Source: Klebsormidium nitens (taxonomy: Eukaryota > Plantae > Klebsormidiophyceae). Taken from it: a stretch of DNA of 42,003 nt. Position numbers and translations under genes: made by a program. Location of the stretch: contig DF237653.1 of NCBI GenBank assembly GCA_000708835.1, forward strand, positions 1 through 42,003. The letters are read 5' to 3'. The notes beneath the pieces are model-generated. The model had not been told where the DNA came from. It saw only the letters and a program-made list of their open reading frames with translations, and searched no databases. Numbering within the stretch: the stretch's first letter is position 1; every line of letters starts with the position of its first letter. Shown here one piece after another: positions 7,007 through 32,407 of the stretch.

Positions 7007-10000
7007 CTATTTCTTCTTTTGCCTGCCTTTCCGCTTTGGCCGCGCGCTGGGGTTTCCGGCCCCCACTTTCGGGCCCGGCCGAGCCGGAACCGCCCGCACG
7101 ACGGGACGGGTCATCACGTTAGACGTCTGCGCAGCCGGAGGTGCCACGTCATCATCAGACAGACCGTCGCTCCCTTCCGCTCCAAGACTCGTCCTCTCAG
7201 CCCGGTCGTCGCGCCCATTCTCGCCGCTGACGTCATAAACCCCCTGTGCCACGTTACCAGACTCGCCGTCGCGAACCCCTTTTCCCACTGTCGAATCTAG
7301 AACTAGGTCCAGCGCTCCGGACCAGTCAGCCAAGCCCAACATCGGCAAAAGTTCTGCGGGGATCGTGGGGGGCCCGTCGCCAAAAAGGTCGCCGTTCTCG
7401 TTACCGTCCGGGGACTCGAAGAGTTCGGTGTGGAGCTCGGACCAATCCTCGTCGTCCACCGACTGGTCCACGACCCCCTGCAGAAAGATCCCAATCATTG
7501 TACAGAATGGAAGCCCAGTGACCGTTAACAAGGACGGGTGGGGTTATAACCATGAGCTATAATAGTAATAGGATCTAAAAGTAGTACGAAGAGGATTCTC
7601 AAGATTAACCAACACGAACTCTCTTACTGCATAAGGACTCGCTCCGCACCCAAACCCATCCTAACCACCACACTAACCCCAAGCGTCCTCGTCCTCACCA
7701 CACTAATCCCTTACTACTATTTATCCTTGTTACTATCAGGGTTTAGATTTTGTGGGGTCAGTTAAGGGGTTGGGGTGGTTACAGGTGCGGAGCAGGTAAA
7801 GTTTCAGATTAGGATTTTTGTCAACCCCAAAATGCTTACTAGTCACGGGGCTTGCTAATCAAGGTATCGAGAATTACCTGCAGAAGCGGCACGACCTCCG
7901 CGTACCGCTCCGCGCGCTCGGGGGGGATCCCCGACCGCTCGCCCGAGTACCACTGCAGAAAGTTCCACGGCTCGCCGGCGCCCGTCACGTCATTCTCCGC
8001 GAGCACGGTCATGATTTGGCTCCCCACGCTGCCCACTTTCGCAATCTTGTCCGGGCTCAATTTCGTCACCTTCTGGAACACCTGTACAGACTCCATCATC
8101 AGGTCGAGATCCGACCCTGCTCGCACCCCGACGTCCGGTTCCGTCCGTTCCGGAGTTCCGGCCTCCGGTTCCGCCCGCCGGACATCCTCCGGCAGCTGCT
8201 TCTCCCCCTGCGCCCGGGCCTTCTTTCCACGCCTGATGCGCCGCGCCCCCGCCGCCCGTTCTTTCGCGCCGCTTCCCTCCCCGTCGCTGACGTCAGCGTC
8301 GCTGATGACGTCCGCGCGCGCGCCGTTGCTGACGTCAGCACCGTTGGGGCTTCCCTCGGTCGAGCTTTCTTCCGGAGTCTCCGGCGCCGACGTCATGCTC
8401 TCTGCTGCCTCCTCTCCCGCGACGCGGCTGACGTCAGCTCCCCAAAACTCGTCGGCGTCGCTCCCTTCTTCTATGATGTCATCAGGCGCCACAGCGCCGG
8501 CGTCCGCCCGAGGCGCGGTGTCAAGTTTCTCCAGCAGCGCTCCGTTCTGCGCGCTTGACACCGCCTCGTTTGGCACGCCCATGTCCGAAGTGGTTTTGGA
8601 AGGGCCCTGTCGTTTGGCGTCTTTACCCCGCGAGTTCGCCATTTGAACCTCGATAACAGTCTCACCAGTCCCCGACAGGGCCTCACCTCCAACCTCCCCC
8701 CTGACCTCGTTTTCAGCCACCGTTTTTTGAGGCCCTGTCCGCGCTCCGTTCTCACTTTCCTTCTGCTTCGCCGCGTCTACTTGCGTCCTAACAGGGCCTT
8801 TGGTCGGCCTTACCTTTGACCATATCGTCGGTTGGCTCTCCTGACTCACAAGCAGCTCCGCCAGCGGCGAAATTTGCGGTGTGTTAACCGCTGGCCGTTC
8901 CGCCGGTTTTTCTGAATCCGGCTCCTTCCGGCCCCGTTCCGCTGGCTTCCGTCGCCGCTCTTTCCGGTCCTCCTCCCCAGACTCAAACCCTCCGCCGTCA
9001 GTGAAGCTCACGCGCACCGTCGGCCGCTCGCTGACGGCATCCTTCTTTCGTTCGGTAGATTTGTCCTTCTTATTTACGCTAACCGTGTCCTTCTTCTGTA
9101 CACTAATGTCCTCTCTTTTCCGCTCGCTGACGTCATCACGTCTCCTCTCACTGACGTCCCCCAGCCTCCGCTCGCTGCCTTTCTCCCGCCGCGTCTCGGC
9201 GGCGCTCTCCCGCCTCCTTTCGCTGACGTCAGCCCGTCTCCGCTCGCCGACGTCCTCCGCTCTGCGCTCGCTGACGTCATCCTTCCTCCGTTCGCTGACG
9301 TCATCTCTTTTCCGGTACACGTACCCCCGCCGCGCCCCCCCTTCCTCCGCCCCTTCCGCCTCCCCCGCGCCCCGCCGCTTCGACGCCGCCCCCCGTCGCG
9401 TCGTGCTGACGTCATCCTCCTCGGGGCTGACGTCAATCACGTGCGCTTCGGGGTTGTGCGCGAGCTTTCGGCCACCGCCCCACGCCTTTTCGCTGCTGCT
9501 TCGATCGGCGCTGTCTTTGCGGTCCTTTGCAGAGTCGAACAGTGGCTCGCTCCTGCCGGACAGCTGGATCTGGAAGTCGTATTCGCGGATGGGGGAGTCG
9601 GGCACCTGCGCAGATGGGTTTACCGACCGGGTTAGCCGGGTTTGTGATAGACTGTTCTTCTTCTTCTCTATTACCGACCGGGTTAGCCGGGCTTTGGGGT
9701 TTTCTGATAGATTGTTCTTCTTCTTCTTCTCATCTACCGACCGGGTCAGTCGGATGAACCGGGTTTGTCATAGATTGTCCTTCTTCTTTCCCTCTAACCG
9801 ACCGAGTTAGGCCGGGCTTTGGGGTTTGTGAAAGATTGTTCTTCTCCTTCTTCTGTTCTTACCGACCGGGTTAACCGGGCTTTGGGATTTTGTCATATTG
9901 ATCTTCTCCTTCTTCTTCTCTCGACTTTCACTGGCTCTCAGATGTCGCTTATGCATTGAAAAGGCGGACACTGAGGCTTGGGTTTGAGAGAGCAAGCTGG

Positions 10001-13000
10001 GCTCAGTCAGCGCCGCAAGCTCCTGCTCATTTGAATAAGAATTCTCTCCGCTCAGCTGTAAACTCACGCATTCGATCTTTCCAAGCGACTGTTCCTTCCT
10101 TCCGCTCAATTCTTATTTGAGACGCCACCGGATGGGGCCTGAATCACGGATGTAAAATGTTACGAGCGACCCAAAACTGACCACAATGACAAAGACGGCA
10201 AAGTAGAGACGAAGGCGGGAGCACATCACGATTCGTTCCCTACCATGACATTGATGTTGACTCGTAGAGCCGCCATCGTGGTGTTCAGCCGCTTCAGATT
10301 GGCTCCCAGGAAGAATTGTTCAACTCTCTCGTGCACGGTCAAGAAGATCGTCGGCCACGTCGGGTTCCGCCCGTTGCTTTCCGGCCGTTCCGCCGAGCCC
10401 GGCGTCCGCGGAATGCTCCCGTCCGCCTCCTTCCGCACGATCGTGCGCTCGATCTCGGCGACGACGGCCTCCCGGGACGGAATCCGGCCGGCGGAAACGG
10501 AATGGAAGTCTTGGGTGCAGAGCGGGCAGGGGGCGGTCAGCAAGTTGGCGAGATTGTCGCGCAACTGCAAGGGACGGATTAAGGAGCTGAGACTCGTAAG
10601 GGTAGGTGGAAGGGTTGAGGTACTTATTGATCCTCTGACAGAACCTGTGGAAGTAGAACGGGGACTCCGGTTTCCCATTCTGCCAGTTTTGGACCCCGAC
10701 ACTGCTTGGTCCTCTATACGCGCGCATCCCAAAGCCGGGTGACCTTCCACATCACTACTGCAGTTATCCGCTTCAGGGCGTTTGCGCTTGGACTCTAACA
10801 ACGAACCTACATACTTGAAATTGTAAGACCGTGGAGCAAAGAAAGTCAGAGTCAAAATTCCTACATCCTGCTCGTGAGACCTGCTCGCTTCAAACTCTGA
10901 CAGCAGCCCAAAAGTTCACAGAGATAAAAGAACAGAGATCGAAAGCCGAGATTTGCGAAAGGCGTGCATCCAAGCTGATTTCGCTGATAAGCTCGAACAA
11001 CAGAAAACTCGACAGATGTTTAGGCTCCTGAAGTGATGAGAATTGAAAGCTCCGGGGCCCCTAAACTGAAAGGGAGTAGCGGAAGTCCGCTCACCCTGCT
11101 GCGAAGAATCTGCATAAAGTTGCCCGGCTCGTTATGGTCTGCTTGCATCAGCTCTATTAACACTCCAAACAACTCTACAAACATTCAGGCCCCCGAAGAA
11201 CTTCTTTGGAGCTCTGGGCTCTAAACTGCTCCTAGAAGCAGGTTCCGCAGTGGGATCCGAGCGTTGAACCTTCTCACCCTGCTGCGCAGAATCTGCATGC
11301 AGTTGCCCGGCTCGTTGATCTTGCCCATCTTCACCCGGGCGCGGTCCGTCTGGAGCGCCTCCCACATCGCCTTCTCCACCTGGACATTCATGGCTGCAAA
11401 AAGGGACACGTGTTGCAACATCGGAACGGGGCGCCCCTAAACGAGTGTTGGTTCGAGGGCGTTTTGTGGGCGCACTCTATTCTGTATCTCGCTTTTCATT
11501 CACCACAAAGCAAGCACCGCGAGTTGACCCGGCTTTTGACCTACCTAAGCGACCCGAGTCGAGGAGTCGATGCAAACATTTCCTTGGATGATGTTTGTGT
11601 ATGCAGTGGGGGATAGCAAACTTCAGACAATCTCAGATTCGATTAGTCACCCGCCCTGGAGCAGAACTTGCTCACCCCGGGCCGTGACGCACTTACGGTA
11701 TCTATGTCAACGAAGTTGACGACCGCACTCGAGAAACAAAGCTACAGAATTTACTCTCAAATTCTTCGAGATCCGCTTCTCCACCTAGATGAAACGCAAA
11801 CCCGCCTCCTAACGGGGGCCTTACCCCACACGAGCTGGCCCGTTCGATGACAACAATCATTACGATCCTAAGACATCTCTCACTGGTAAACACCACAACA
11901 ATGATTCCTTTGCGCTGAAGGACTTGCTCGACTCTCGTCAAAGCCAACACAAATACAAACCCGCCCGCTAACCCAGCCCTTAACCCACCTGGGCTGGCCA
12001 TGTCGATGAAGTCGATCACCACGATCCCCGACACGTCCCGCGCGCGCAGCTCCTTCGCCACCTGTCGGGCGGCCTCCAGATTGATCCTCAAGTGCGTCTC
12101 GCTCTGCGCTTCGGCACGTGTACGATTTCCTGACGTCACCGCCCGCCCGCCGTTCACGTCGATCGACCAGAGGGCCTCCGTCTTTTGGATCACGAGGTAA
12201 GCGCCCGACTCTAGTTGCACGCGGCTCTGGAAAATCGAGTTGATCTGACCTTCGACGCCGAAAGCGTCCATCACGCCCTGTTTCCCGGAGTACAGCTCGA
12301 CGCGGTTCATTAAGTGCTCGCTGTTGTTTTCGGCGAGGTATGACATCACCTGGGCGTGCACTTCGGGGGTGTCCACAACCAGGCGCACCACCTGCGGAAG
12401 GGGAGGGGGGGAAGGGTTGTAACATCTTGAAGCAGCCAGAGTAGTCGAACATCGTTCTTGGCATGTGCAAGTGTGGTTCCACGTGTTGAAAGTGAACTCC
12501 AAGGAACAAATGATCCAGCGACTCAACCGCGGCCGCTGTCCGACTAGGCTTTTGAGTGCGAGACGGGTCGGAGATTGATGTTTGATATAGAAAGTAGCAC
12601 TTGAGAAGAGTCGTGGTAGCAACCGTTTACTCTAGCCTTACACGTAGAAGTAAAGCTACATATAGGGCCCCATTACCCAAAGCCACATCAGTCGACGACT
12701 CTTGATCTGCAATTTGGCACCGAGAGCAGCTTGCAAGCCCATAATGTAAGACTTTGATCTCTAAAGCGCCAAAGGTGCAGAGGTAACCCGACGACATCCT
12801 GCCAGAAACCCACCTCGGTCGACATGAGGTCCCGCACGATGGCCTGCGTCGGCGTCATGGCCTTGTACAGCAGCAGCGCCCCCGTGTTGCGCTTCACCGC
12901 CTCCTCCGCCTTCCGCAGGATCCCCTCGATCACCGTTTGCACCTGGCAGGCGGATCGCAAAAGTTCACGATCGCCCAGGTTGTGCCTTATTCCTAAATTT

Positions 13001-16000
13001 TCAAATCACAACTCAGACAGCAACGTAAGCCTTTAAGCAGTCCATTGCGTTAGGACCGCGGTGACGGTTTGCTTCAAACTGGGCAAACCGCTCAGGAACT
13101 ACAAGTCTCAAGTGTCCATCTTTTGACGTAAAAAGATGAAGGGCGACGAGACTATTCAGAGTTCTGCGGTGTGCCTGCCTGGGAGAAGTCTTGTTGAATC
13201 TTCTTTCCCTGCGCCGCCTTGAATTCCGTGCGCATCAGCAGGCAATACCACGGGTTTGGCTTTCTAAACTATTTGACTCCAGAGTACTGATTTAACTCAA
13301 CTCAGGCCCGACTCTTGACTTTGACGGCATAAAACTCGAGACTTGTTTCGCACCTCTTAGCCATGTTGTTGGATCACCTTCCCCTGAGCCGCCTTGGACT
13401 CAGTGCACAGCAGCGAGCGGTGATCTACTTTTAAGATTTTGGTTCTGTCTGAGACCGAGGCTTTGATGCAACTAGGCCTAACTTCACGGAAAACCAGACC
13501 TTGTTTCGCACCTGGTAAATGTCCTGTTGAATCTCCTTCCCCTGCGCCGCCTTGGACTCAGTCCGCAGCAGCAGGCGGTACCCGGCGGGCTTCAGCAGCT
13601 TGCCCAGCGTCTCGAGCCGCTTCCGCTCGTCGCCGGAGCGGATCTTGGCGGAGATGTGCACGCCGTCGCTGCGCGCAGTCAGCACCTGCATAAACGGTTA
13701 TGGGCAAGTTTGAGTATGAGAACAGTGTCAGGTTCTGAAGGCTTCGAGACTGTCCGCAGTTTCACAAAGCGACTTTAGTCCGCTCTCCAATCCGCTAGGG
13801 GATCAATGGCTGCAATGGTCACAACGTCGCCGTGCGCGGTCAGCACCTGCACCATGGTGTCAGGGTTTTGGGGATCCCAAATCCCTGATTCTTGCTGAGA
13901 TATGACGGCTCCGGAGTTCCGCAACTTGTACAGAGTGCTCTCGGGTCCGCAGGGGAGCGGAGCTTGGCGGGAGTCTGCACGCCTTCGTTGAGCGCGGTCA
14001 GCACCATTCCGAAACTTGAAACGTCCTGAGTGCATCTTCAGTCCTTTTCCAAGCGGCCGACGAAGCTCAGCCCGACGGCTCTTTCTACAAGCCTCGTTGC
14101 CATAATGACTTCACATTGAAGGCCCCTTGTAGAGGCCAGATCTGGGGCCACACCGTGGAGACTGAGTTGTCCTAATGCCAGAGCGCTGTTACCTTCCTAT
14201 GTAATGAACGAAAGGCCGAAGAGGAGGGACGCAAACAATTTGGAATGGGCTGCTGCCCCTTCCGTTTCTATGGGTAGAAAGAGCGCGGTGGATGTGCCCG
14301 AGACAAAAGTTACCACCTGTTTGATCCAATCGCCTCACACATGGCGCCCCAGGTGGCTCAGCATTACGGACACCTTGGGCACCTTTCTGCTGTACAAATC
14401 TTCTGCTGAATTTCATCGATCTCAAGCCCCTTGTATGATTGAACGAAAATGGAACTCAGAGTCCGTTCAAAGCCCTGAAGAGACTTCGTAACCGCCTCAC
14501 CACAAAGCGCCCCGGGTGGCTCAGCACGGCGGAGACCTTGGGTCCCTTGCTGCCGTACGATTCTTTGGTGCACTTGACCACCACAAAGTCGCCCACCTCC
14601 ACGTCCTGCCAGTTGCGCGACGTGGTCCATCCTGATTGGCGGAGTGCCACGTGCCCGTCTTTGCCTGGAAGGGAAGCACGAAGATCGTAGCTAAGAAAGG
14701 GCATTGATGTGCTCCGCTCTCGTTAGAGGGAAAGAGATTGCTTCTTTCCTGTAATGATTGCTTCTAAGTGATGCAGGGAAGCAAGTGGATGAATGCGTTG
14801 CTTGAGAAGCAAGCGTGATAAAAGCAGTGACCTCAAGTTCTCCCTCAATTGAGCCCTGTCCCGTGGACGTTGTGAGACACAGACGCTAGACGGGGCAACT
14901 TCTTGGTGTCGCAAATATGACGAAGCTCATGCTTTGCCTGAAATTTCTCGGGCTCTCGCATTTGTCAAACGCGTGGGTTTTTCGAAGCGCAACGTCATCC
15001 GGACGTCCGGCATTTTCGAGAGCTCCCTCTCCGAAGCCCAAAATATGCCGGTGCCTAAGGCAACAGGGGCAGGTATCAAAACAATCAAACCCATACATCC
15101 CACAGAGTTCATTGCGAAGCTTCATTGATAACAGCAGCAATACACGTACAAATCAAGTTCTGTAGAGAGCAATCTCAACGCTTCAAAGTTGAAATGGCGG
15201 CATCGATTGTACGTACCACCACCCTCCTTTCCTTCTGCATCGCCACTCTCGCCTTTCTCGTCCTCGTCTCCATCTTCCCCTCCCTCCTCCCCTAGTTGCA
15301 ACTCTTCCTCTTCATCCCCTTCCTCGGTCATGACGTCATCCTCGCCGTCATCGCCCCCTTCTTCCTCCTCGTCGCTCGCGCCCGCCTCCGCCTCCTTCCG
15401 CCCTGTTCCGTTCCGCTCGGCCTCCTTACCGGAACCGGACCCCGTTTCCAGCTCCTCAACCCCGTCGCCGAATTCCGCTCCGACACCGGAATCCGTCCCG
15501 TCACCGAAATCTTCGTCCCCACCGCCGACCGCCTCGACGCTCCCGTTGGGCAGCCGCCGGAAGACGTACGGCCGGTGGTGGTTGTATGCTTGCAGGAACG
15601 CCTTTTTGTACACGGTGACGTCGACGAACAGACCCGCCATCGCGCGCACCTTGGCGGTCACTTGCGCCAGTAGCACGTCACCAACCGACACCTGTCCAGG
15701 AAGGAAAGAACATAATCGACTCCAGAAATGCTTTCAGTTTAGGTTTTGGGAATTTGTCTGTCACAAGTGACGTCGACAAACAGCCCCGCCATCGCACGCA
15801 CTTTGGGGGGTCACTTGCGCCAGCAACACGTCACCCACCGACACCTGGCCAAGCAATCAGGCTCTTATGCGTAACAGCATTCGGAGTTGTGGATTATGAG
15901 TAACACGGTGACATTTACTAACAGACCCGCTATTGAGCATACCTCGCGGTCACTTGCGCCAGCGGGACGTCGCGCACAGCACTTGGCTGCGACCAAAAAC

Positions 16001-19000
16001 TTCCACTCTGGTTACTTGATCTGTCGCTGTTTCGAAGGAAAGCGTTGTGAACAAAAACGAACTATGGGACAGAAAAACCTTCGCAATTGTGTGCGCTTTT
16101 TCGAGAATCAATAGCTGGATTCTTCATCGTCGGGACACTTGAATCATGCGATGTCTCAAAGCGGGCTTTTGAAAGGTGGCAATGTAAGGGTGCCGGGGTT
16201 TTGACTGACACGGTCACGTTGGAAAAAAAGAGAAGAACACAAACAAGCCTGTTCTTGCTCCTTTCCTCGCTTTAACAAGGATCTCAAATCAATTTCAAGA
16301 TTGTTTGAGTCAACAATCATCCGCAGGAACCGAACAGGAACCTTTCAACTAAACCGTCTTCGACGGAACTTTGCGGCGCGTGAGTGCACCTGCTTCTCTT
16401 GCTCCAGCAGCATCTCCGCCAGCCTCCCGTCTTCCAGGATGGCGACACGTGGCATGGACGTGCGCGCCGCGTTGATGATGATCTCGCGCCGCACCTTGGG
16501 CCCCGCATCCGGTGCCTGTCAGAAGAGAAGAGTCAGTAAGTCTTCAAGTGTGGGGAGGTTTATGGAGGCGATGTGTCGGGGTAAACCAGGGGTTAGAGGT
16601 GGTTAATCATCTGGTGCCTTAGGCGCCAAACGGTTTGGCAAGGATCACAAGGCTGGCTTTGGCAAGGGTGTCCTGATACCTTGTAGCGGAAGAAGTATTC
16701 GATGAGACTTGCATGGCCGGATTGAAGTCTGTTTCATTCTTTCTCGTACAACCTACTGACGGTGTCGTCCTTCGCATGCAATCAGGCCTTCGCTTGGCCT
16801 AATTGTTTGAACGAGTTGCAACCTTCACTGACCATCTGAAAAAGACACTGAAAAGGACTGCAATTCAAGCCACTCCATCCGAGCATTGCCCTCGCTTGTC
16901 CGCCCTTGCAGAATCTCCCGCATCAGCCCCGACTCATAACTTCCTCAAAACCTCCCAGGAAAACAACCATTCCCAACAACGAAACCATCAAAGAGCTTCT
17001 TACCTCAGTTCTCCTCTCCGTCTCCGGCTCGTCCCCCTTCCCTTCCACCACCTCTTCTCCCTCGTCCCCTTCCTTCGTCCCCTTCTTCACCCCCTTGAGC
17101 TTCGCCAGCTCTGCGGGAATCGGCGCGTCCTTGGCCACTTTTCCCTCCCGCTCTAGTTCCTCCCGGAACTCCGCCTGCCGGAGCGCCTCCCGCCGGCGCT
17201 GCTCCGCGACGCGCGCCTGCACCGCGTCCTGCTGCGCGAGCCGCGCCATCTGGCGGGCCATCTTGCCCGCGTACACCTCAGGGTGGAACACCTGCCGGAA
17301 ACAAACTTGGTTAAAATTAATCCAAGACATAACTCAAGTGATCCAAGGAATGAACGTCATTCTTGGACCGTCGACCTGTCGTGTGCGCGAGGCGCGCCAT
17401 CTGGCGGGCCATCTTGCCCGCGTACACCTCAGGGTGGAACACCTGGCAAAGACGGTCTGGTCAACCTTCAACCCAAAAAATCCAAGAAGCTGACGTCGAT
17501 AATGATCTCGACCTTGATCGTGGGACGGTATTGTTTGCGCACAGGGCGTGGTGCTCAAAACGCGCCATCTGGCTTGCCCGCAGAAACTGCCGGGTGAAAC
17601 ACTTAGCAGGAACGGGCTCTTTACCTGATCTCGACTTGGAGACAGTAATCTACAAACCTAACACTGACTCATATTACCACGTCCGCAAAAGTTTCCACCC
17701 TGAACCCTTAAAGTAACCCCGCCCAGCCCAGATTGACCATCATTCCTATACAGATTTGGAGAGTGCTTTGTGTTCAATCTATGCGCGAGGAAGCGACAGA
17801 GATTTGATTTGATGTTCCTTCATGACCTTCTGTGTTTTTTACGCAAGCTTCGTTTCTCGAAGCTTGCTGCGCAGTCGTGTGAAGCTCTCCGTCGCTTTGT
17901 GCACGTTCCTCACAGATGAGTGCTTCCCTCCTTCTAAGATGCAAAATCGTTTCCGCACCTGCTGCGGCCCCAACCGGTGGTACGCCTTCTGGTAGCACCG
18001 GTTCTTGATCGTCTGCCACTCCCGATCTAGTTCCTGCAGCTCCCGCCGCAAAAGCACGTCCGACACGCCTTCCGCGGACGCACGCACGGACAGCCCGCAA
18101 CCGGGCACCGCGTTAAGGGCGACGAAGAGGAGCAGGCGGTGGCGCTCCGACCCGAGGATCGTGGGGTGGACATCCAAGATGTCGTTGCGCCCGGGGCGGA
18201 AGATCTGTACAGGAAAGCCGAGATCTAAGGAAAGACGTGGGCGTCCACAGCTGGGTTCTTTTCATTTTGGGTTTTAACACAAAGCGGGCGCTCGGAGCGA
18301 CGAATGGGGGACTGAGTTTGAAACGGCCAAACAGGATATTGGTATTGTATTGACCTCGAATCCAAAGATTCACGATTCAGAATACAGCTTCGGTTCGGAG
18401 GGAAAGCTTCCAACACTTGCGGACTCTTTGGACGGCTGACATAGGGCCTCGTGCTCAACCCCTGAAAGCTCGCCACCCACAAATACCGCAGATCGCCCCA
18501 ATTCTTTTGTATACCATTGAAGGACAGAACAGTCCCAAACTGTCCTCGACTCCCTAGAACTTTAAGCGCCTACAACCTCGACTGCAATCACGACACCCCA
18601 TATGTCCATAGTTTTCGTCACAATCTGGAGCCGTTGAAAACCAGGCACATATTAGATTCCTCAATGGAGCGACAGGATAGATGGACAGCAAACCCGCAAT
18701 CAAACATTGGCCGCCTGAGAGCGTCAGCTCTGCTTATGAATGCAGTACATTTCTCCGCTCTCAATCTTCTCACAATACCGCGCAAAATCCCTCACCATGT
18801 GGTTCCCGCTTATTTCGATCTCGGTCGACACCTCCGGCATCGGGTGGCCGTCCTCCCACGTGCGCCCGCTCGCGCTCGGCCCCTTGACTTGCACCAGCAC
18901 GTACTGGCCGCGCTTCGTCTTGGCCCAGATCGTCTCCCGTAATTCCGACGAGCACTTTTGGCCGCTTAGCTTGGAAAACAGGAACTCGTGCCGCTGATAA

Positions 19001-22000
19001 ATGACCGGCCCGTGCGACCCGGGCTGCCGGTCGGTGTGCTCGGTCTCGGGCTCGGCTTCGGACGCTTCTACAGCCGACTCGGACACTTCTGCGGTCGCGT
19101 CGGACGACTCTGTGGTTAGTTCGGACGCCTTCGAGTCAGCCCCACGTTTGGCGGCATCTGCCGTTGATTCGGACACATCAAGCGGCAATTCGGACGCATC
19201 AGCCGCTAAGCCAGGTGCATCAACCCCCGAACCGGACGCCGCTGCTACCGATTCGAACGCCACCGTCGGCATTTCGGACGCCTCTTCCGAAGTTGACTGC
19301 TCTACTTCCGCATTTGACGCTTCTTCCGTTTTTGATTTCTCCGTCGCCACTTCAGTTGCTTTTGCGGTTGTCCCTGTCTCCGTTACTGATTTAGAAGGCT
19401 CATCCCTTATCGACGCCTCTGAGGTCGCTTCCGGCGTCCCGCTCAAGGACTGCGGCGCCTCTGCTTTGGCTCCCGACGGCTCTACTTTCGCTTCGGACGC
19501 TTCGGATGCCGTCTCCGAGTCCGTGCCGGACGCAGCGTCCGTTTGGAACGAACCCACTGTGGCTCGCACAAACTTGTTCACCGATTCGGACGGCTCGCTC
19601 GCCGCGCTACTCTCTGCTTTTTTCGTTTCATCCAAATCCCGCCCCTCGGCGGACACCGACTTCCCCTCCTTCGCTTTCTCGTTTTCGCCATCCGCAGCAC
19701 TACCCTTATCCGCATTCTCGCATTCTGACACCTGTTTCGCCCCGTTCGAACCGTCCGCGCCGTTGGAACCGTCCGCACCGCTCGACCCCTCCGCACTGTC
19801 CGACCCGTCCGCGCCTCCCTTCTTCGCCTTCCACGGCGCCTTCTTCGCAAACTCCTTGTCGAACTTGTTCCACTTGCCCAGAAATCGCATCGGCACGCTC
19901 TCGAAATTGTAATCCAACACAACCGGGGGGATCGCGTTGTTCCCGGCTTCCAGGAGTACCAGAGCCCCCCCCCGCGCCGGTAAAAGCTCCTGAATCACTC
20001 CAATGAAAATCGTACCGGCCACCGGCCCGTGGTATTCGAGCGCCCGGGACAAGTCCACCAACCACGGCTCCTCCATGTAGGGGTACCCCCACACTTCTTT
20101 CAGCCTCTCCCAGGGCGCCTCCATTGCCCTGTCCACCGCCCCCCCCTTTCGAGGCAGCCCGTCGTGCGCCTCTTGCAGCTCTTGAACCAGCTTCTCGATT
20201 GGGGCGGAAGCGCCCGGCGCTTTCCTCCGGGCTACCTGCCTCACCCCCGGTTTTGTCTTCGCGTCCGTAACGTCCCCCGTAGCCGCCCGACGCTTCTCTA
20301 GTTCTTCCTCCAGAACGGCCCTCACGTCTTCTGGCAATTGGTCGCCATACCAATCCATTACCGCCCCAGCATTTTCCCGCAAAACTGTTACCACATTCTC
20401 GCCTTCCTCTAACCACTCCTCCCACGAGCCCACCAAGAGTTCCTCTTCGCTAACCGCCTCCAAACCCGCCGTTGGGTCGCTAACCCAAACCCGCACCCCG
20501 CCGTAGGATCCCTCTACCGCCTCCGCCAGATCAACATCTACCGCCCCATGCTCCTGCGCTCGTTCCCGCACTTCTTCCATGCGCTTCTCAATCTCTATCA
20601 CGTTAAGTGGGGCGTAACCCTCGGTTCCCCACAGCTGGTTAAGCGCCTCCCGAAACTGCGCTAACAGGTCTCGGTGCCGCTTTTTGCCCTCTGCCGCACA
20701 ACGGTCCACCAGAATGTTGTACAGCCGTTCTCTCAGCGCGCGGGGGGCAGTCTTGCCGGAGCTTTCCACGATGCCCTCGACGAAGTTGCGCGCGCGTTTC
20801 AGCAGGTTGAGGTAGTCGAGCTGCCGGATGCCGTTGACCCAGATGGTGAAAAGGTCGTTTGCGAACCTGCGAGGCAGAATTGAGATCTCCTTTTCTTCAG
20901 GTCTTCCGTCTCTTCGACTCTGAGAGGTCTGAAAACTGAAGCAGACTCATATGCACCTTCGGCAAACTGGAACCTCGAATGGTAATTCTAGAAACGAGCC
21001 GTGTTTGACATTCTTCGCCTGACTGTCCGCCTACAGAACTAATCTGCCTTATATAGATGCGTGGTATGCAATCTATTCCCTCATGAAATCCAGCACGAAA
21101 GCATCTGGTTAGGACCGATTGTGAAACGGCTGCGCTTCGCCTTTTCCCTCTGATAGTGGATGCATATGGAACGAATTCCTCCCCTAGATCTTTTCCATAA
21201 ACCCGCCCTTTCCGCCCTCACGAGAGTATGTTGATCCAAAACGAGGGTGCTTTTCACGTCAGATGAAGGGCACTGATGAAAACAAATCAGAGAGAAGCTT
21301 CGAATCCTCACTCGTCAAACTCGTCTTCCGCGCTCGACACGATCCCCGGGATCACGTTGCTGACGACATCCTCCAGGATGGTGACGGCAGCATCGAGCGC
21401 GCGGTCGTCAGCCAGCTTTCCCTCCAGGATCAACCGCTGAAGATCCGTTACCGCCACGTCAATCGCCTTGACCCCTCGGGACTTAAGCGCTGACCCTAGG
21501 TTGCAGATGATCTGGAACGCGGACTCGTCAACGCCAACCCCATCTACGATTTGCCCGTCAAAGGCGACCCATCTGCAGAAAGGACGGTGATTTGGTCGCC
21601 GGAGGAGACATTAGGACCAGTTTCCGCGCCCACCTTGAGCCTAACCCGGCGCCCAAACAGGCGCGCCGGAAACGCAGAAGCCCTGCCGGGAACCTCCGAG
21701 CTCGCCTGCTAACAAAGCGCCTCGAACCGCCCAAACAGTGTACAGCCGTTGCATTGTTACTTCCCAATTCGCCTCGTCGTCGTACATGAAGAAGAGACAT
21801 TAGGCGAAACGAACAATCTTTTGTTATGTGTTGTTTCTCGTCTTTTGGTCAGGTCTTGCAAGTAGCATGGGCCTCGATCGATTCTTTCCAGTTCACGGCA
21901 GAGAAGAGGCTGCACTGGATACGATTGACGTCAAACTTTCCCCCCCCTTTGCAGAATTTTTCTTCTCCTTCTCAAACTGGGAATCCCCCACAGATACAAG

Positions 22001-27601: not shown

Positions 27602-28218
27602 TGCACGCACTGTCTAGCACAACCTGGCGACCGCATCCTATCAACTCCAAATATGGATTGATCAGATTGGCTGGCGACTGAACCCTGCAACCTTCACCAA
27701 AGCTGCGGCTTTGGACCCAAGCTTGAGCTGCCAGCTCCTCTGGCCTACGACATTGAATGTAGAGCAGCTGAGTGCACTATAGACTCCGAAGAGGATGGTC
27801 AGAACAAATTTTGGGGCTTTTTCCAATCAAAGGTATCCGAAGAGCTGAAAGGCTGAAGGGGGCTTTTTCCAATCAAAGGTATCCGAAGAGCTGAAAGGCT
27901 GAAGCCAACAAAGACGTCAAGAATCACGGCCGTGCAGGGCGCTTCTAACCCTGACACTCGAAACGCTTCAAGGGGCCAGTTGCTCCGGAGCAGAGATCCT
28001 GTGTCAATTTGCTCGCTTCGACCGTCCGGGACCGGCGTCCTTCCGCAAAAGGTACGGGACGTGCTTCTCCGGGTTCAAGGACATTCCGACGTTGAAGGAC
28101 ACTCCGAGTCTTACGCTCACGAAAGACGGAGGGTTGTTGTCGCAAGGGAGCCATAATGTGCCAGCTCCTTTTCAAAATGCGCGAAACGGTATCCTCTCTT
28201 TAGGGCAGCAAAGCAATA
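27602..28218. promoter_or_regulatory. Putative bidirectional promoter between RNE (minus) and the PELP1-like gene (plus)
   Basis: Only 617 bp separate the two divergent inferred ATGs. The region contains duplicated CCAAT motifs. Confidence 0.55.
27813..27904. repeat. Perfect 46-bp tandem duplication
   Basis: GGGGCTTTTTCCAATCAAAGGTATCCGAAGAGCTGAAAGGCTGAAG occurs at 27813-27858 and 27859-27904. Confidence 0.95.
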
Positions 28219-31200
28219 ATGTCGAGCGCTGCCCTCTTCCTAAACGGTGCCGGTCAGGGGGGCCCGGCCCAAGGGGGCACAGACCTGAAAGCCCTCCTTC
28301 TGAGGGGCATCCTTGCCACGCTGTTCCCTCCCCACCAAGTCGGCGCCGCCCCCGTCGACGCCGCTTCTCCTCAAATTGTGCTGCAAGCCGCGTCCACAAT
28401 TGAAGCCCACCAGCTGCTGCGAGAAACTGACAATGGGACCACCGAAACTGCCCAGAAGCAGCACCAGCGAGCAGTGGACCAATGGGTCGACCGGCTCTCG
28501 GTCAATCTGGGGGCGCCAGGTGGCGCGAGATGGGCGGCCGCGTGCCTCGCGGGTCTCACCTGCAAGGAGATTGGCGCAGAGCGGTTTCTGGCGCTGTATC
28601 AGGGACTAGCTGGGAAGCTCGTCGCAATGTGGAAGGAAGCGGAGGGAGCGGAAGTGGTGGGGGCAGTGCAAGCGGCTTTGAGCGATTTGGTGGGCAGGTT
28701 GGGACAGCTGGCGGACATGCCGGGCGTGAGGCGCGAGGGCGCCGGGGTGGTGGCTAAAATTGTGCAGCCGTTGATTGGGGTAGGAATCTTTATGGCCGCT
28801 TACTCCCAGAATGTTATATGTTCTGGGCCTCTTTGAATGTTTGAGTGTGTGGCACAGATCTATGGAATAACCTATGTGCTCACAGGGTGTGTGCCCAGTG
28901 TCACCCTCGCGCCCTCTGAGTTGGGGCGTCCCACAAACGGGACTGCTTTGGTGCACATTCTTTGGATTAGTGATCCTGGTAACGGTCTCGATGGGAGGGT
29001 GGTCGCAGTCTCTGAACCTCCCTAGTGCATTTTGTCGATGATGAGGCCACAACAAGCCGCCAACACGCATGTGGGGACTCTCAACACATACTTCTACAGG
29101 TTGATGTTCACCACACTGTTTTCCCAGGCAATTTTGCTTCTTAAAGACGGAACGAGCAAAGGTGGCAGCTGAGAGGTTGTAGACGCCAACATTAAGTAGC
29201 TTTCTGATCTTGAAACTTCACTGCAGGCATTAGGCTCGTCCCCGTCTCAAGACGCTGCCGCCGAGTCGCTCGACCTGCTCATCGTCTCCCTGCAAAGCTT
29301 CCCCTCCCCCTTCCGGCACCACTCCGAAGCCGTCGAGACAGCTGTCATCAATCTCCTGCTCAGAGGCCCTTCCGACATCACGCTACCCAACGCGCCCCCG
29401 CAAGTCACCCGCGCTGCCACAGCCCTGGCGCTCCTCCCTGTGGCGGCCGGAGACGCCGCCACCTGGAGCGCCCTGATTCACCGGCTGCTCATTGCCCTCA
29501 ACACGCTGCTTGTGCCAACGCTGTCTGGGTTGGAAAGCCCCGCCTCGTTTGAAACGGCCGCCTCGCTTCTCCTTCCCCAGGGATCCCCCCCTCCCCCCCC
29601 TCTCGGACGCTTTGACTGGTCCTTATCCAACATGCCCACCAGCCACTTATGGCCGCCCACCGTCCCGGTGATTACGTCAATCCTGACAGCGACGCGAGCA
29701 ATGCTGACGTCAGCTTATCCGGTCTCCGTCCCCATACCCGTCGCTCCAATCTTAGCCCTCGTCGCCCGCTTATTGAACGTCGTTGGCACCTTATTCGGTG
29801 CGGGCGCTTATGACGCTCTGAGCGGGGACCGGCAAGCAGCACTTCTGGCGGAGCTGCCAAACCTGCAAAAACTCGCGCTGGATTTGGCGGTTGCGCTTTT
29901 AGCAGGGGCTGGGACGCATTTACTGCCGCACGGGGAGCAATTAGCGGGTTTCGTGGGTGACGTTCTGAGGCGGACGTCAGGAGAAGTTGCTGGAATGTCA
30001 GTGCTCAGAGTCCAAGCATATAGGGCGGCGGAAGAGACGCTGGCGTGCTTGGGCGCAGGTAAGTTATAAAATGTTCCTTTGAGGTGGCTGAAGAATGCAC
30101 TTGCGTCAATGAGGTCAACGTTTGGGTGTAGGGATCGTCTTCTGAGGTTTGAGGGTTTAGTCAATCGTTTGTACGTTTCATAAAATGGGAGTTGGATTCT
30201 CGAGAGCTTAATATTTCATTTCCTCGTTTTCGGCTGAAGCGATTAAATGAACTTGCTGACCTTTCAACCTCAGAACCCATCAGTGTGGTTCTCAAGCTGG
30301 ACCCTGATTGGAACACCTCCGTTTGCAGGCGTCTCTCTCGTTCTAGCCCCGACTCTAGTTCCCCATGCCCTCTCCGACCTCCGCCATGCCCACCGGTTCC
30401 TCACTCAGCCCCGGACACCGGACGCCGGCGCGCTACATCTGTCCGATATTCTCCAGCCCCAGGGGGGTGGTTCGACTGGCGGCCGGAAGGGGGGGAAAAG
30501 AAGGAAAGGCGGTCGGGATGGCTCTACCGGGGGGCCTGTGTCCGCGGAAGTGGGAGCGGAAGAGGCGTTCGAAGTGGCGGGGGGATCCCTCCGGGCAATC
30601 GAGAAGCTGCTCGCTGTGGTGAGAACGGGCCCGGTGCTTTCTCTTAAGAGACTGAACTGGTCAATTTTCTGGCGAAGATCTCTTTAGGTCTGTAAAGGGA
30701 ACCGGTCAAACTTTGTACTTCAGCAGTGGGTATTCTCTATTCGTCATGCCCCTAATGTGGCTCGGTTAGACCCACAACGAGATCCTAATCGAGTCTAATG
30801 ATGTCTACAGAGATTCAACAGTGCAAACCAGTCTTGTTGCGGTCTAAGCTTCCCTGTTGGCAGCCTTGCTCATGTTACTTGCTCCATATATCTTTTCAGG
30901 GCGGGCCCTTGATTCCCGAGAAGTGGCGGACTGAGCTCGACGCCGCAATCTTCCACGTGGCACACCTCGCGGCAGGGGGGATCCCCCGGGCAGGGTCCGG
31001 GGCGCTCCGCCTCGCAGCGTGCAGGGCTCTGCTAGCCTCTGTGACGTCACCCGGGAGCCACCGGCCGCCGTACTTGCCGCAAGCGCTCGCGATCTTCCGA
31101 AGATGTGAGCATGATCCCGCTCAGAAGATGCCGTTCGTTTTAAGCAAAGGGAGGGATTGGACGAAGGGAACCGAAAGAGCAAGAAAGAGTTTGGAACTCT

Positions 31201-32407
31201 TGCTGTCATGTCGGCGAAGCGAGAAGGGAAAGTCATGGCCCTCCGGTTGAGCTTCTTTTGGAGAGCGTTCGGTCAGATTTATTCTAGAGAGGCCCTTGCA
31301 TATTGAAGTCCTTTTGCTCGATCAATGGCGTGTGAGACTCCTATTGTCACTCTTGAAGCCGACGTGCATACGACCGTCTCGTCTGCTGACCACACCGCTC
31401 TCCGTCCTGCAGGCCGTTCGGAAATTGGTACCCCGGTCGGCGCGTTCAGCACGCACGCACTGCTCGTCCTGGAACCCTTTCTACATCCTCGTTCCTTGCC
31501 GGTCCTCAAACTGCCTGGCGGGTCTCGTTCTGGGGGGGTCCTGCCCGCTGCCGACGCAGCCCCCCGGAACGCGTTCAGTAACGACCCGTGGCAGGAGGCG
31601 GAGGCGTGGCTGGGTTACGGTGCGGGGTTCCGGCACGGGCTGGAGCAGTGTGAATCGGCCCCAGAGGAACAGGAGACGGCCCCGGAGGAGTGTGAAAAGG
31701 CTCCCGAGGGGCGAGAACCGTCAGTGCCGCAGCGGGAGGGGGACCTTGAGACGGGGGCCGTTTCACACCACAAGCGAAGCAGGTTAGAGTCCGATGGAGC
31801 TACCCGAGACACCGGTGCTGCGGCTCTAGAGAACCGGGGGCGCGGCGAGGCGGCCATCGCAGAGCAGACCGGCCGTTCTGCTGACGTCACCATGTCGGAG
31901 GCACGGGAGCACGCTGACGTCAGTACTCCAGTGGCAGGCAAGGGTTCGGGTTCCAAGGGTTTGGACAATGGGGGCGCTGAGGCGGGGACGACGTCAGTGG
32001 ACGGGATGAAGCACGTGGCTCCGAACGAGGGCGGAGGAAAATATCTAGAGAAAGGTGGTAATGATGCTGGCATCGGTGCTTCTGGAACGAAACGGTTGCG
32101 AGAGGAAGAGGCTGTCGAAAAGGAAGTGCGTATGGGCGGGGATGCGGAACCAAGGGTTGAGCCAGGGGCGAAAGAAGCTCCAAACTACTTGAGACCGGGA
32201 GACCTGGCGGTGCTGGCCGCAAAGGAAAAGGGAAAGTTGGAAGATGAGCCCGATTCGAAAAGTAACGCAGAGCGCGAGAGTGCGGCTGAAGCTGCGCGGA
32301 ACGTTTTTGGTCTCATGCCAAGAAAAGGAGGGGACGCTGACAGCGACTCCGAAGGTCCTTTGCCGTCCATTGTGGACGGGGATCCAGACGATGATGATTT
32401 TATGTAA
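28219..32407 (+). CDS. RIX1/PELP1-like pre-60S processing factor (rixosome subunit), 5 exons
   Basis: Exons 28219-28779, 29227-30058, 30329-30618, 30900-31104, 31413-32407, all GT..AG and phase-consistent. HEAT-like helical N-terminus with family-like segments WVDRLSVNL, RWAAACLAGLTC, LALLPVAAGDAATWS, PVPVAPILALVARLL, LAACRALLAS, PPYLPQALAIFRR, HALLVLEPFLHPR, and the acidic end PLPSIVDGDPDDDDFM. Assignment is from motif recall. Confidence 0.8.

Follow-up and report, generated by a model that had tools for sequence, protein, structure and literature searches.

One spliced messenger RNA (mRNA) of the alga Klebsormidium nitens encodes a giant plant-type ribonuclease (RNase) E in which an extra module, specified by exons 7–9, stands upstream of an intact RNase E core specified by exons 10–17. 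The gene lies on the minus strand of a 42,003-nucleotide (nt) stretch of contig DF237653.1, which as a whole is called the window below. RNase E is a central nuclease of RNA decay and processing in many bacteria and plastids; movement of its S1/5'-sensor body links recognition of the substrate to its cleavage. Profile similarity points to the extra module being a second, degenerate copy of this body, spliced in frame to the intact enzyme.

The evidence for a single gene comes from RNA contigs of four public runs (four studies, two organism labels), which were mapped on positions 15001–21000 of the window and reach about 710 nt upstream and about 1,510 nt downstream beyond this interval. In three of the runs, exons 7–11 were all found spliced on one contig of about 5.4 kilobases (kb), and the fourth run showed identical joints spread over shorter contigs. 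The joint of exon 8 to exon 9 (17959 to 17291) was seen in the contigs of all four runs, as was the joint of exon 9 to exon 10 (17004 to 16515), the latter on contigs that also carry exons 7–8 and 11. All introns between exons 7 and 11 have GT..AG ends on the minus strand, and splicing exons 7–11 gave 1,068 open codons. Exons 12–17 were located from GT-AG sites and from sequence shared with a related genomic contig (L001); the spliced exons 7–17 of the window form a stop-free frame of 1504 amino acids (aa), and the L001 counterpart has 1556 aa. An earlier note on this stretch, made from its letters, had proposed that the module exons splice in phase through exon 9 into the canonical RNase E, and had named the 17004-to-16515 junction beforehand as the test between one gene and two. 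The RNA joints and the open frame bear out the proposal, and the junction is present in transcripts, which means one gene.

Because the exon 9–exon 10 joint is present in the RNA contigs, a reading as two tandem genes is refuted for the major transcript. At 16495–16713, run X1 has an unspliced contig of low depth (2.5 versus 31) that joins exon 10 to the adjacent 3' end of intron 9; it may derive from pre-mRNA or from a minor internal start. As a possible mark of an internal start it was the only support found for two tandem genes, against which stand the joint in four of four runs, the open frame and a layout kept in four genomic loci. We consider it extremely unlikely that the layout reflects two tandem genes or that the similarity of the module to RNase E arose by chance; against chance, the profile statistics and shuffled controls given below favour homology.

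The core has the features of an intact enzyme. Against a profile built from 110 bacterial RNase G proteins (502 positions), the spliced core scored 315–320 bits, and exon 15 alone reached 138.1 bits against the Pfam family RNase_E_G (PF10150), whose gathering score is 25.5. The catalytic Asp/Asn residues (D303, N305 and D346 in Escherichia coli, numbered here through an alignment of the bacterial RNase G protein P0004 to PDB chain 6g63_A) are kept, with SIDVNGG and VVIDFIDM aligning to aiDVNtG and viDFIDm of the profile, as is the Cys pair of the Zn-link, with APCPLC aligning to epCptC. The equivalents of R169/T170, F57, F67 and K112 are also found at matching columns (LLLRTES, GLFVDV, KKAFLQ and YGSKGPKV, respectively). 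The canonical catalytic exon is 51% identical to the bacterial RNase G proteins P0004–P0007. The canonical S1 is split by a Gly/Glu/Asp insert of 114 aa with a net charge of -38, and exon 12 ends at a phase-0 intron (GRFV/VL).

The extra module and what it has lost

The spliced exons 7–9 matched the RNase G profile at 32 bits, in a single alignment that crosses the exon 7/8 junction. Once the acidic insert in the S1 of the module (S1') had been removed, the score rose to 34–36 bits over profile positions 24–213, and 3000 shuffled versions of the module scored 6.6 bits at most. Comparison of the module with the RNase G alignment by hhalign gave a Prob of 96.7 and an E-value of 4e-10 over 185 aligned columns. 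In L002, a locus from a second species pair, the module alignment extends to profile position 235, that is, into the first RNase H-like helix, which is encoded at the start of exon 9. The module thus spans the equivalents of E. coli residues ~24–225. For exon 8, the sole Pfam match was RNase_E_G (profile positions 9–82) in the window, L001 and L002, with E-values of 4.7e-5, 4.6e-4 and 8.9e-6, respectively, and scores of 20.1–25.8 bits, of which that of L002 (25.8 bits) lies just over the gathering score; in a six-frame scan the exon was found at an E-value of 3e-5. These data strongly support that the C-terminal half of S1' and the sensor are a true but degenerate RNase E homologue.

The earlier note had read a second S1 and a second 5'-sensor in exons 7–8. 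The profile similarity sought in 17959–20020 was found with both the RNase G profile and hhalign, and the quoted peptides are present; the reading stands firmly for the C-terminal half of S1' and the sensor, but the N-terminal half of S1' is marginal when taken alone (1–3 bits, hhalign E-value 0.03), and its assignment is a weak one that draws on collinearity with the remainder and on correct position. The Pfam matches that the note expected were likewise obtained in part: PF10150 matches both copies, but the S1 family (PF00575) matches neither, because both S1 domains are split by inserts. No alignment was obtained when exon 8 was compared by BLASTP with the canonical sensor exon, and phmmer and a shallow profile run against PDB sequences gave no RNase E match, so that the relationship appears visible to deep profiles only. 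The six-frame scan of the window, L001 and L002 found no further RNase E-like piece.

Besides the marginal N-terminal half of S1', two results of structure prediction weigh against the assignment. AlphaFold2 models of exon 7 (three sequences) reached a predicted local distance difference test score (pLDDT) of 40 and were too poor to use. Exon 8 (four sequences) was modelled at a pLDDT of 77.8 with a beta-alpha-beta-alpha order, and comparison of this model with the PDB yielded weak matches of a generic kind and no RNase E (Foldseek best E-value 0.34, VIA-align best Z 4.9). Feature searches of the ESM Atlas scored below 0.85 and gave S1 families as weak leads only. The oligonucleotide-binding (OB) fold and the 5'-sensor fold proposed for the module are therefore claimed from sequence profiles alone.

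In S1, F57 and F67 are the aromatic residues that stack on RNA. In the extra module, the F57 equivalent is Leu and the F67 equivalent is Ile (Leu in L002 and its partner locus L003), and a longer loop, SASGRTWEDGHPMPEV, stands in place of the GxKG loop with K112. The T170 equivalent is Ala in the window and L001 and Pro in L002 and L003, and the R169 equivalent is Arg in three of the four loci and His in L001. Behind the module no DNase I subdomain, Zn-link or small domain follows, with the alignment stopping at profile positions 213–235 of 502. On these points the earlier note was right: the module lacks the GxKG motif, has Ala at the T170 position (with Pro in L002/L003 as an addition), and is without the catalytic DVN/DFID subdomain and the Zn-link in both the profile alignment and the six-frame scan. 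The first half of S1' has a net charge of -2, versus +5 in the canonical copy, and its C-terminal half is mildly basic. The parts of the module and of the core are listed in Table 1.

Table 1. Positions in the window of the exons and module parts of the RNase E gene
Feature	Position	Strand	Content
Exon 7	18796-20866	-	N-terminal conserved region, then S1' with acidic insert; in RNA contigs
Exon 7, first 266 codons	20068..20865	-	Conserved region upstream of the module; open frame in RNA contigs
S1' N-terminal half	19846..20067	-	PWLVD...GTIFIGVIQELLPARGGALVLLEAGNNAIPP...; RNase G profile positions 20-72 with the insert removed
S1' loop insert, 278 aa	19012..19845	-	Acidic, Ala/Ser/Glu-rich; net charge -33; length differs between loci
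S1' C-terminal half	18796..19011	-	...KRGQYVLVQVKGPSASGRTWEDGHPMPEVSTEIEISGNHM; profile positions 95-140; ends at phase-0 intron
Exon 8	17959..18204	-	Degenerate 5'-sensor; LSVRASAEG where the canonical copy has LLLRTESKA
Intron 8	17292..17958	-	Carries two echoes of the exon 9 acceptor/5' end
Exon 9	17004..17291	-	Post-sensor helix VFHPEVYAGKMARQMARL, charged helical stretch, Lys/Glu linker into the canonical enzyme
Exon 10	16390-16515	-	Canonical start, RNase H-like N-terminal strands (KVRREIIINA...); profile positions 2-37; RNA junctions
Exons 11 (15217-15691) and 12 (14501-14664)	14501..15691	-	Canonical S1 with Gly/Glu/Asp-rich acidic insert
Exons 13 (13512-13685) and 14 (12814-12942)	12814..13685	-	Canonical 5'-sensor (LLLRTES) and RNase H-like part; PF10150 4e-9
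Exons 15 (11989-12391), 16 (11278-11393) and 17 (10244-10564)	10244..12391	-	DNase I-like subdomain, Zn-link (PCPLC), small domain; PF10150 5e-40

Selection on the module and origin of the second copy

The layout is kept in four genomic loci that form two species pairs, the window with L001 and L002 with L003. When 1.84 billion representative proteins were searched with the N-terminal 335 residues of exon 7, P0001 and P0002 alone were returned, and a profile search with exon 8 returned P0123 only; the contigs of P0001 and P0002, and the fourth locus reached via exon 8, have the same exon order. No relatives were found beyond the four loci, in a protein search that did not cover full-length plant or algal RNE proteins, and scans of metagenome contigs returned nothing. 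Between the window and L002, aa identity is 43–56% in the module and 62–81% in the core, with similar values for L003, and all four loci share the splice sites of the module.

To describe selection we give the ratio of nonsynonymous to synonymous substitution rates (dN/dS) for the window/L001 pair and then for the L002/L003 pair. The values were 0.13 and 0.19 in the N-terminal half of S1', 0.07 and 0.012 in its C-terminal half, 0.26 and 0.10 in exon 8, and 0 and 0.04 in the first 50 codons of exon 9, compared with 0–0.19 and 0–0.07 in the canonical exons and 0.55 and 0.43 in the acidic insert. The first 50 aa of exon 9 are identical between the window and L001 at a synonymous divergence (dS) of 0.29. 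Upstream of the module, the first 266 codons of exon 7 show 80–90% aa identity within the species pairs and a dN/dS of 0.22–0.38; they matched no Pfam family and are partly helical in a low-confidence model of P0002, the L002 orthologue. Because dN/dS is low in both halves of S1', in exon 8 and at the start of exon 9, the module reads as a protein domain under purifying selection and not as decaying sequence.

That the module is a relic, kept as a mere spacer in a long N-terminal extension, would agree with the loss of its canonical functional residues and with the poor conservation of N-terminal extensions in plant RNase E (PMC2486463). The same figures speak strongly against it: dN/dS falls to 0.012–0.07 in the C-terminal half of S1' and to 0–0.04 over the opening 50 codons of exon 9, compared with 0.43–0.55 for the acidic insert of the exon that encodes S1', and the module is conserved between the species pairs. 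We hold a relic to be very improbable.

Regarding the origin of the module, both copies have a phase-0 intron at one profile column, which corresponds to the L127/V128 boundary of E. coli (GNHM/IF in the module, GRFV/VL in the core), in all four loci. By a rough estimate, a match of intron position and phase by chance has a probability of about 1–2%, assuming two module introns, about five in the matching core and about 750 position-phase sites. In addition, the acidic inserts of both copies sit in one S1 loop, which weighs less because this loop is a known hot spot for insertion. The shared intron together with the insert in the same loop favours an exon duplication within a eukaryotic genome, in which the exons for the 5'-sensor/S1 (5/S1) body would have been duplicated after the gain of the S1 insert and of the L127/V128 intron.

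Two observations count against such a duplication. Of 179 aligned residues, only 29 (16%) are identical between the copies, and in a tree of the 5/S1 region they do not come out as sisters: each has a long branch, and the two branches join the tree close to the same bacterial sequences. The tree does not reject a sister placement either, as forcing the copies together costs 1.6 log-likelihood units (approximately unbiased (AU) test, p 0.34). The identity of only 16% suggests that the duplication is old or that the copies diverged fast. Of the earlier note's claims on origin, the acidic S1 insert and the phase-0 intron at the same aligned site are thus confirmed in both copies and in four of four loci, and an intragenic duplication in a eukaryote is favoured by them, but the low identity and the undecided tree leave it short of established.

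The module might instead be the remnant of a second gene of the RNase E/G family that was fused upstream and then lost its catalytic half. In line with this, the module has 17–29% identity to bacterial RNase G (the highest value with P0004), more than it has to the canonical copy of its own gene; for the core, identity to bacterial RNase G reaches 33%. The unconstrained tree, too, does not directly join the two copies. Against a fusion, the introns of the two copies agree in position and phase and their inserts occupy one S1 loop; the AU test leaves a common clade unrejected, and the scan of the window, L001 and L002 contained no second RNase E/G-like coding piece. We consider such a fusion doubtful, although an old duplication and a fusion of paralogues are alike in what the sequence can tell of them.

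Possible roles and known relatives

In E. coli RNase E, the "5/S1 subdomain (residues 36-214)" moves as one unit that brings RNA to the active site (Koslover et al., PMC2631609), and R169 and T170 bind the 5'-phosphate (PMC2631609). The piece that appears duplicated in the window corresponds to this mobile unit, residues ~36–214, plus the subsequent helix. Unlike the E. coli 5/S1 body, the extra copy is without F57, F67, the K112 loop and T170, carries the 278-aa acidic insert, and does not stand on an RNase H/DNase I platform of its own.

Because its framework is kept, the canonical contacts to RNA and 5'-phosphate are lost and the tether to the core is conserved, we give an even chance to the module being a tethered pseudo-clamp of structural or regulatory function. 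A strictly conserved helical stretch and a charged linker of ~100 aa join the extra copy to the core. The pseudo-clamp might bind to the catalytic core, or else to partner proteins, and thereby adjust access or assembly. In our reading of the sequence, such a structural or regulatory role is more likely than that of a second sensor of 5' ends. The retention of R169 in three of the four loci and the basic character of the sensor exon (isoelectric point 9.3) argue against this reading to some degree, in that they would permit some RNA binding.

These features could also be taken to mean that the module is an RNA-binding platform for 5'-end-independent substrate capture, a direct-entry or accessory site that would raise affinity or shift the specificity of the core. 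The OB/S1 and sensor frameworks are under selection, as such a platform would be, and the mildly basic C-terminal half of S1' together with the sensor exon would suit it. In contrast, F57, F67, the K112 loop and T170 have all been replaced, and S1' has an acidic first half with the acidic insert in its loop; we regard an RNA-binding platform as possible but rather unlikely. The earlier note had proposed RNA capture, autoinhibition or altered oligomerisation as roles, and among these RNA capture via the canonical surfaces looks the least likely, because all four contacts have disappeared and S1' has an acidic first half where that of the canonical copy is basic.

A more specific form of regulation would make the dead 5/S1 body a built-in allosteric regulator that sits, in cis or on an adjacent protomer, where the real clamp docks on the RNase H/DNase I platform, and that gates substrate access together with its long acidic, nucleic-acid-like insert. 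We rate this proposal as less likely still than an RNA-binding platform. If true, the allosteric module would be a natural pseudo-subunit version of the autoinhibition and clamp closure studied in bacterial RNase E. For the pseudo-clamp in general, a natural enzyme with a second, disabled and selected clamp offers a ready-made experiment on the roles of the clamp beyond RNA binding.

Among known systems, the gene resembles that of plant plastid RNE in being nuclear and intron-containing, in its RNase H, S1, 5'-sensor, DNase I and Zn-link parts, in the S1 insert (114 aa here) and in the long N-terminal extension before the catalytic domain. Arabidopsis RNE (At2g04270) has 996 aa and a poorly conserved N-terminal extension, and plant RNase E carries an S1 insert (PMC2486463). 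Unlike Arabidopsis RNE, for which a second S1/5'-sensor is unreported, the K. nitens protein holds a recognisable second 5/S1 body in its N-terminal extension, which could account for some of the N-terminal extensions of plant RNase E that have lacked an explanation; the finding has limited reach, as the module was found only in four algal loci that are closely related. In sequence, both copies are nearest to proteins of the bacterial RNase G or Rne-Rng family (PF10150), which have ~490–530 aa and one module each, with no tandem S1/5'-sensor among those retrieved. In the literature searched, we found no description of an RNase E for Klebsormidium or other streptophyte algae, and no tandem S1/5'-sensor in any RNase E. 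The enzyme is thus a variant of a known family, so far confined to one small lineage.

Gene boundaries and intron variation

Coding blocks conserved with L002 continue upstream to ~26.8 kb and match no Pfam family. Farther upstream, long plus-strand open reading frames (ORFs) at 28200–32400 (e.g. 31325–32407 and 29440–30069) suggest a neighbouring gene on the opposite strand that bounds the RNase E gene. At the other end, the RNA contigs pass exon 17 by ~200 nt (1,510 nt minus the exon lengths), and a minus-strand ORF of 588 aa with repeated charged motifs (…DVSERR…) lies downstream of exon 17 at 7839–9605; it probably belongs to this gene as a large exon at the C-terminal end. Judged from these coding blocks, a length of roughly 2,600–3,200 aa, about 3,000, is plausible for the whole protein, which the earlier note had put at approximately 3,180 aa.

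The introns of the gene differ between the loci. The GT-AG sites between exons 13 and 14 are conserved between the window and L001, and this intron is missing in L002 (18065–18367) and L003 (15180–15482), where a single exon of 303 nt is found; it has been gained or lost within the lineage. Finally, the acceptor and the first ~60 nt of exon 9 (17233–17294) are echoed in intron 8, at 17384–17445 with 98% identity and at 17549–17618 in decayed form. The echo acceptors are unused, as the RNA contigs splice only at the true acceptor at 17291, and the introns of L001 also hold echoes of adjacent exon ends.

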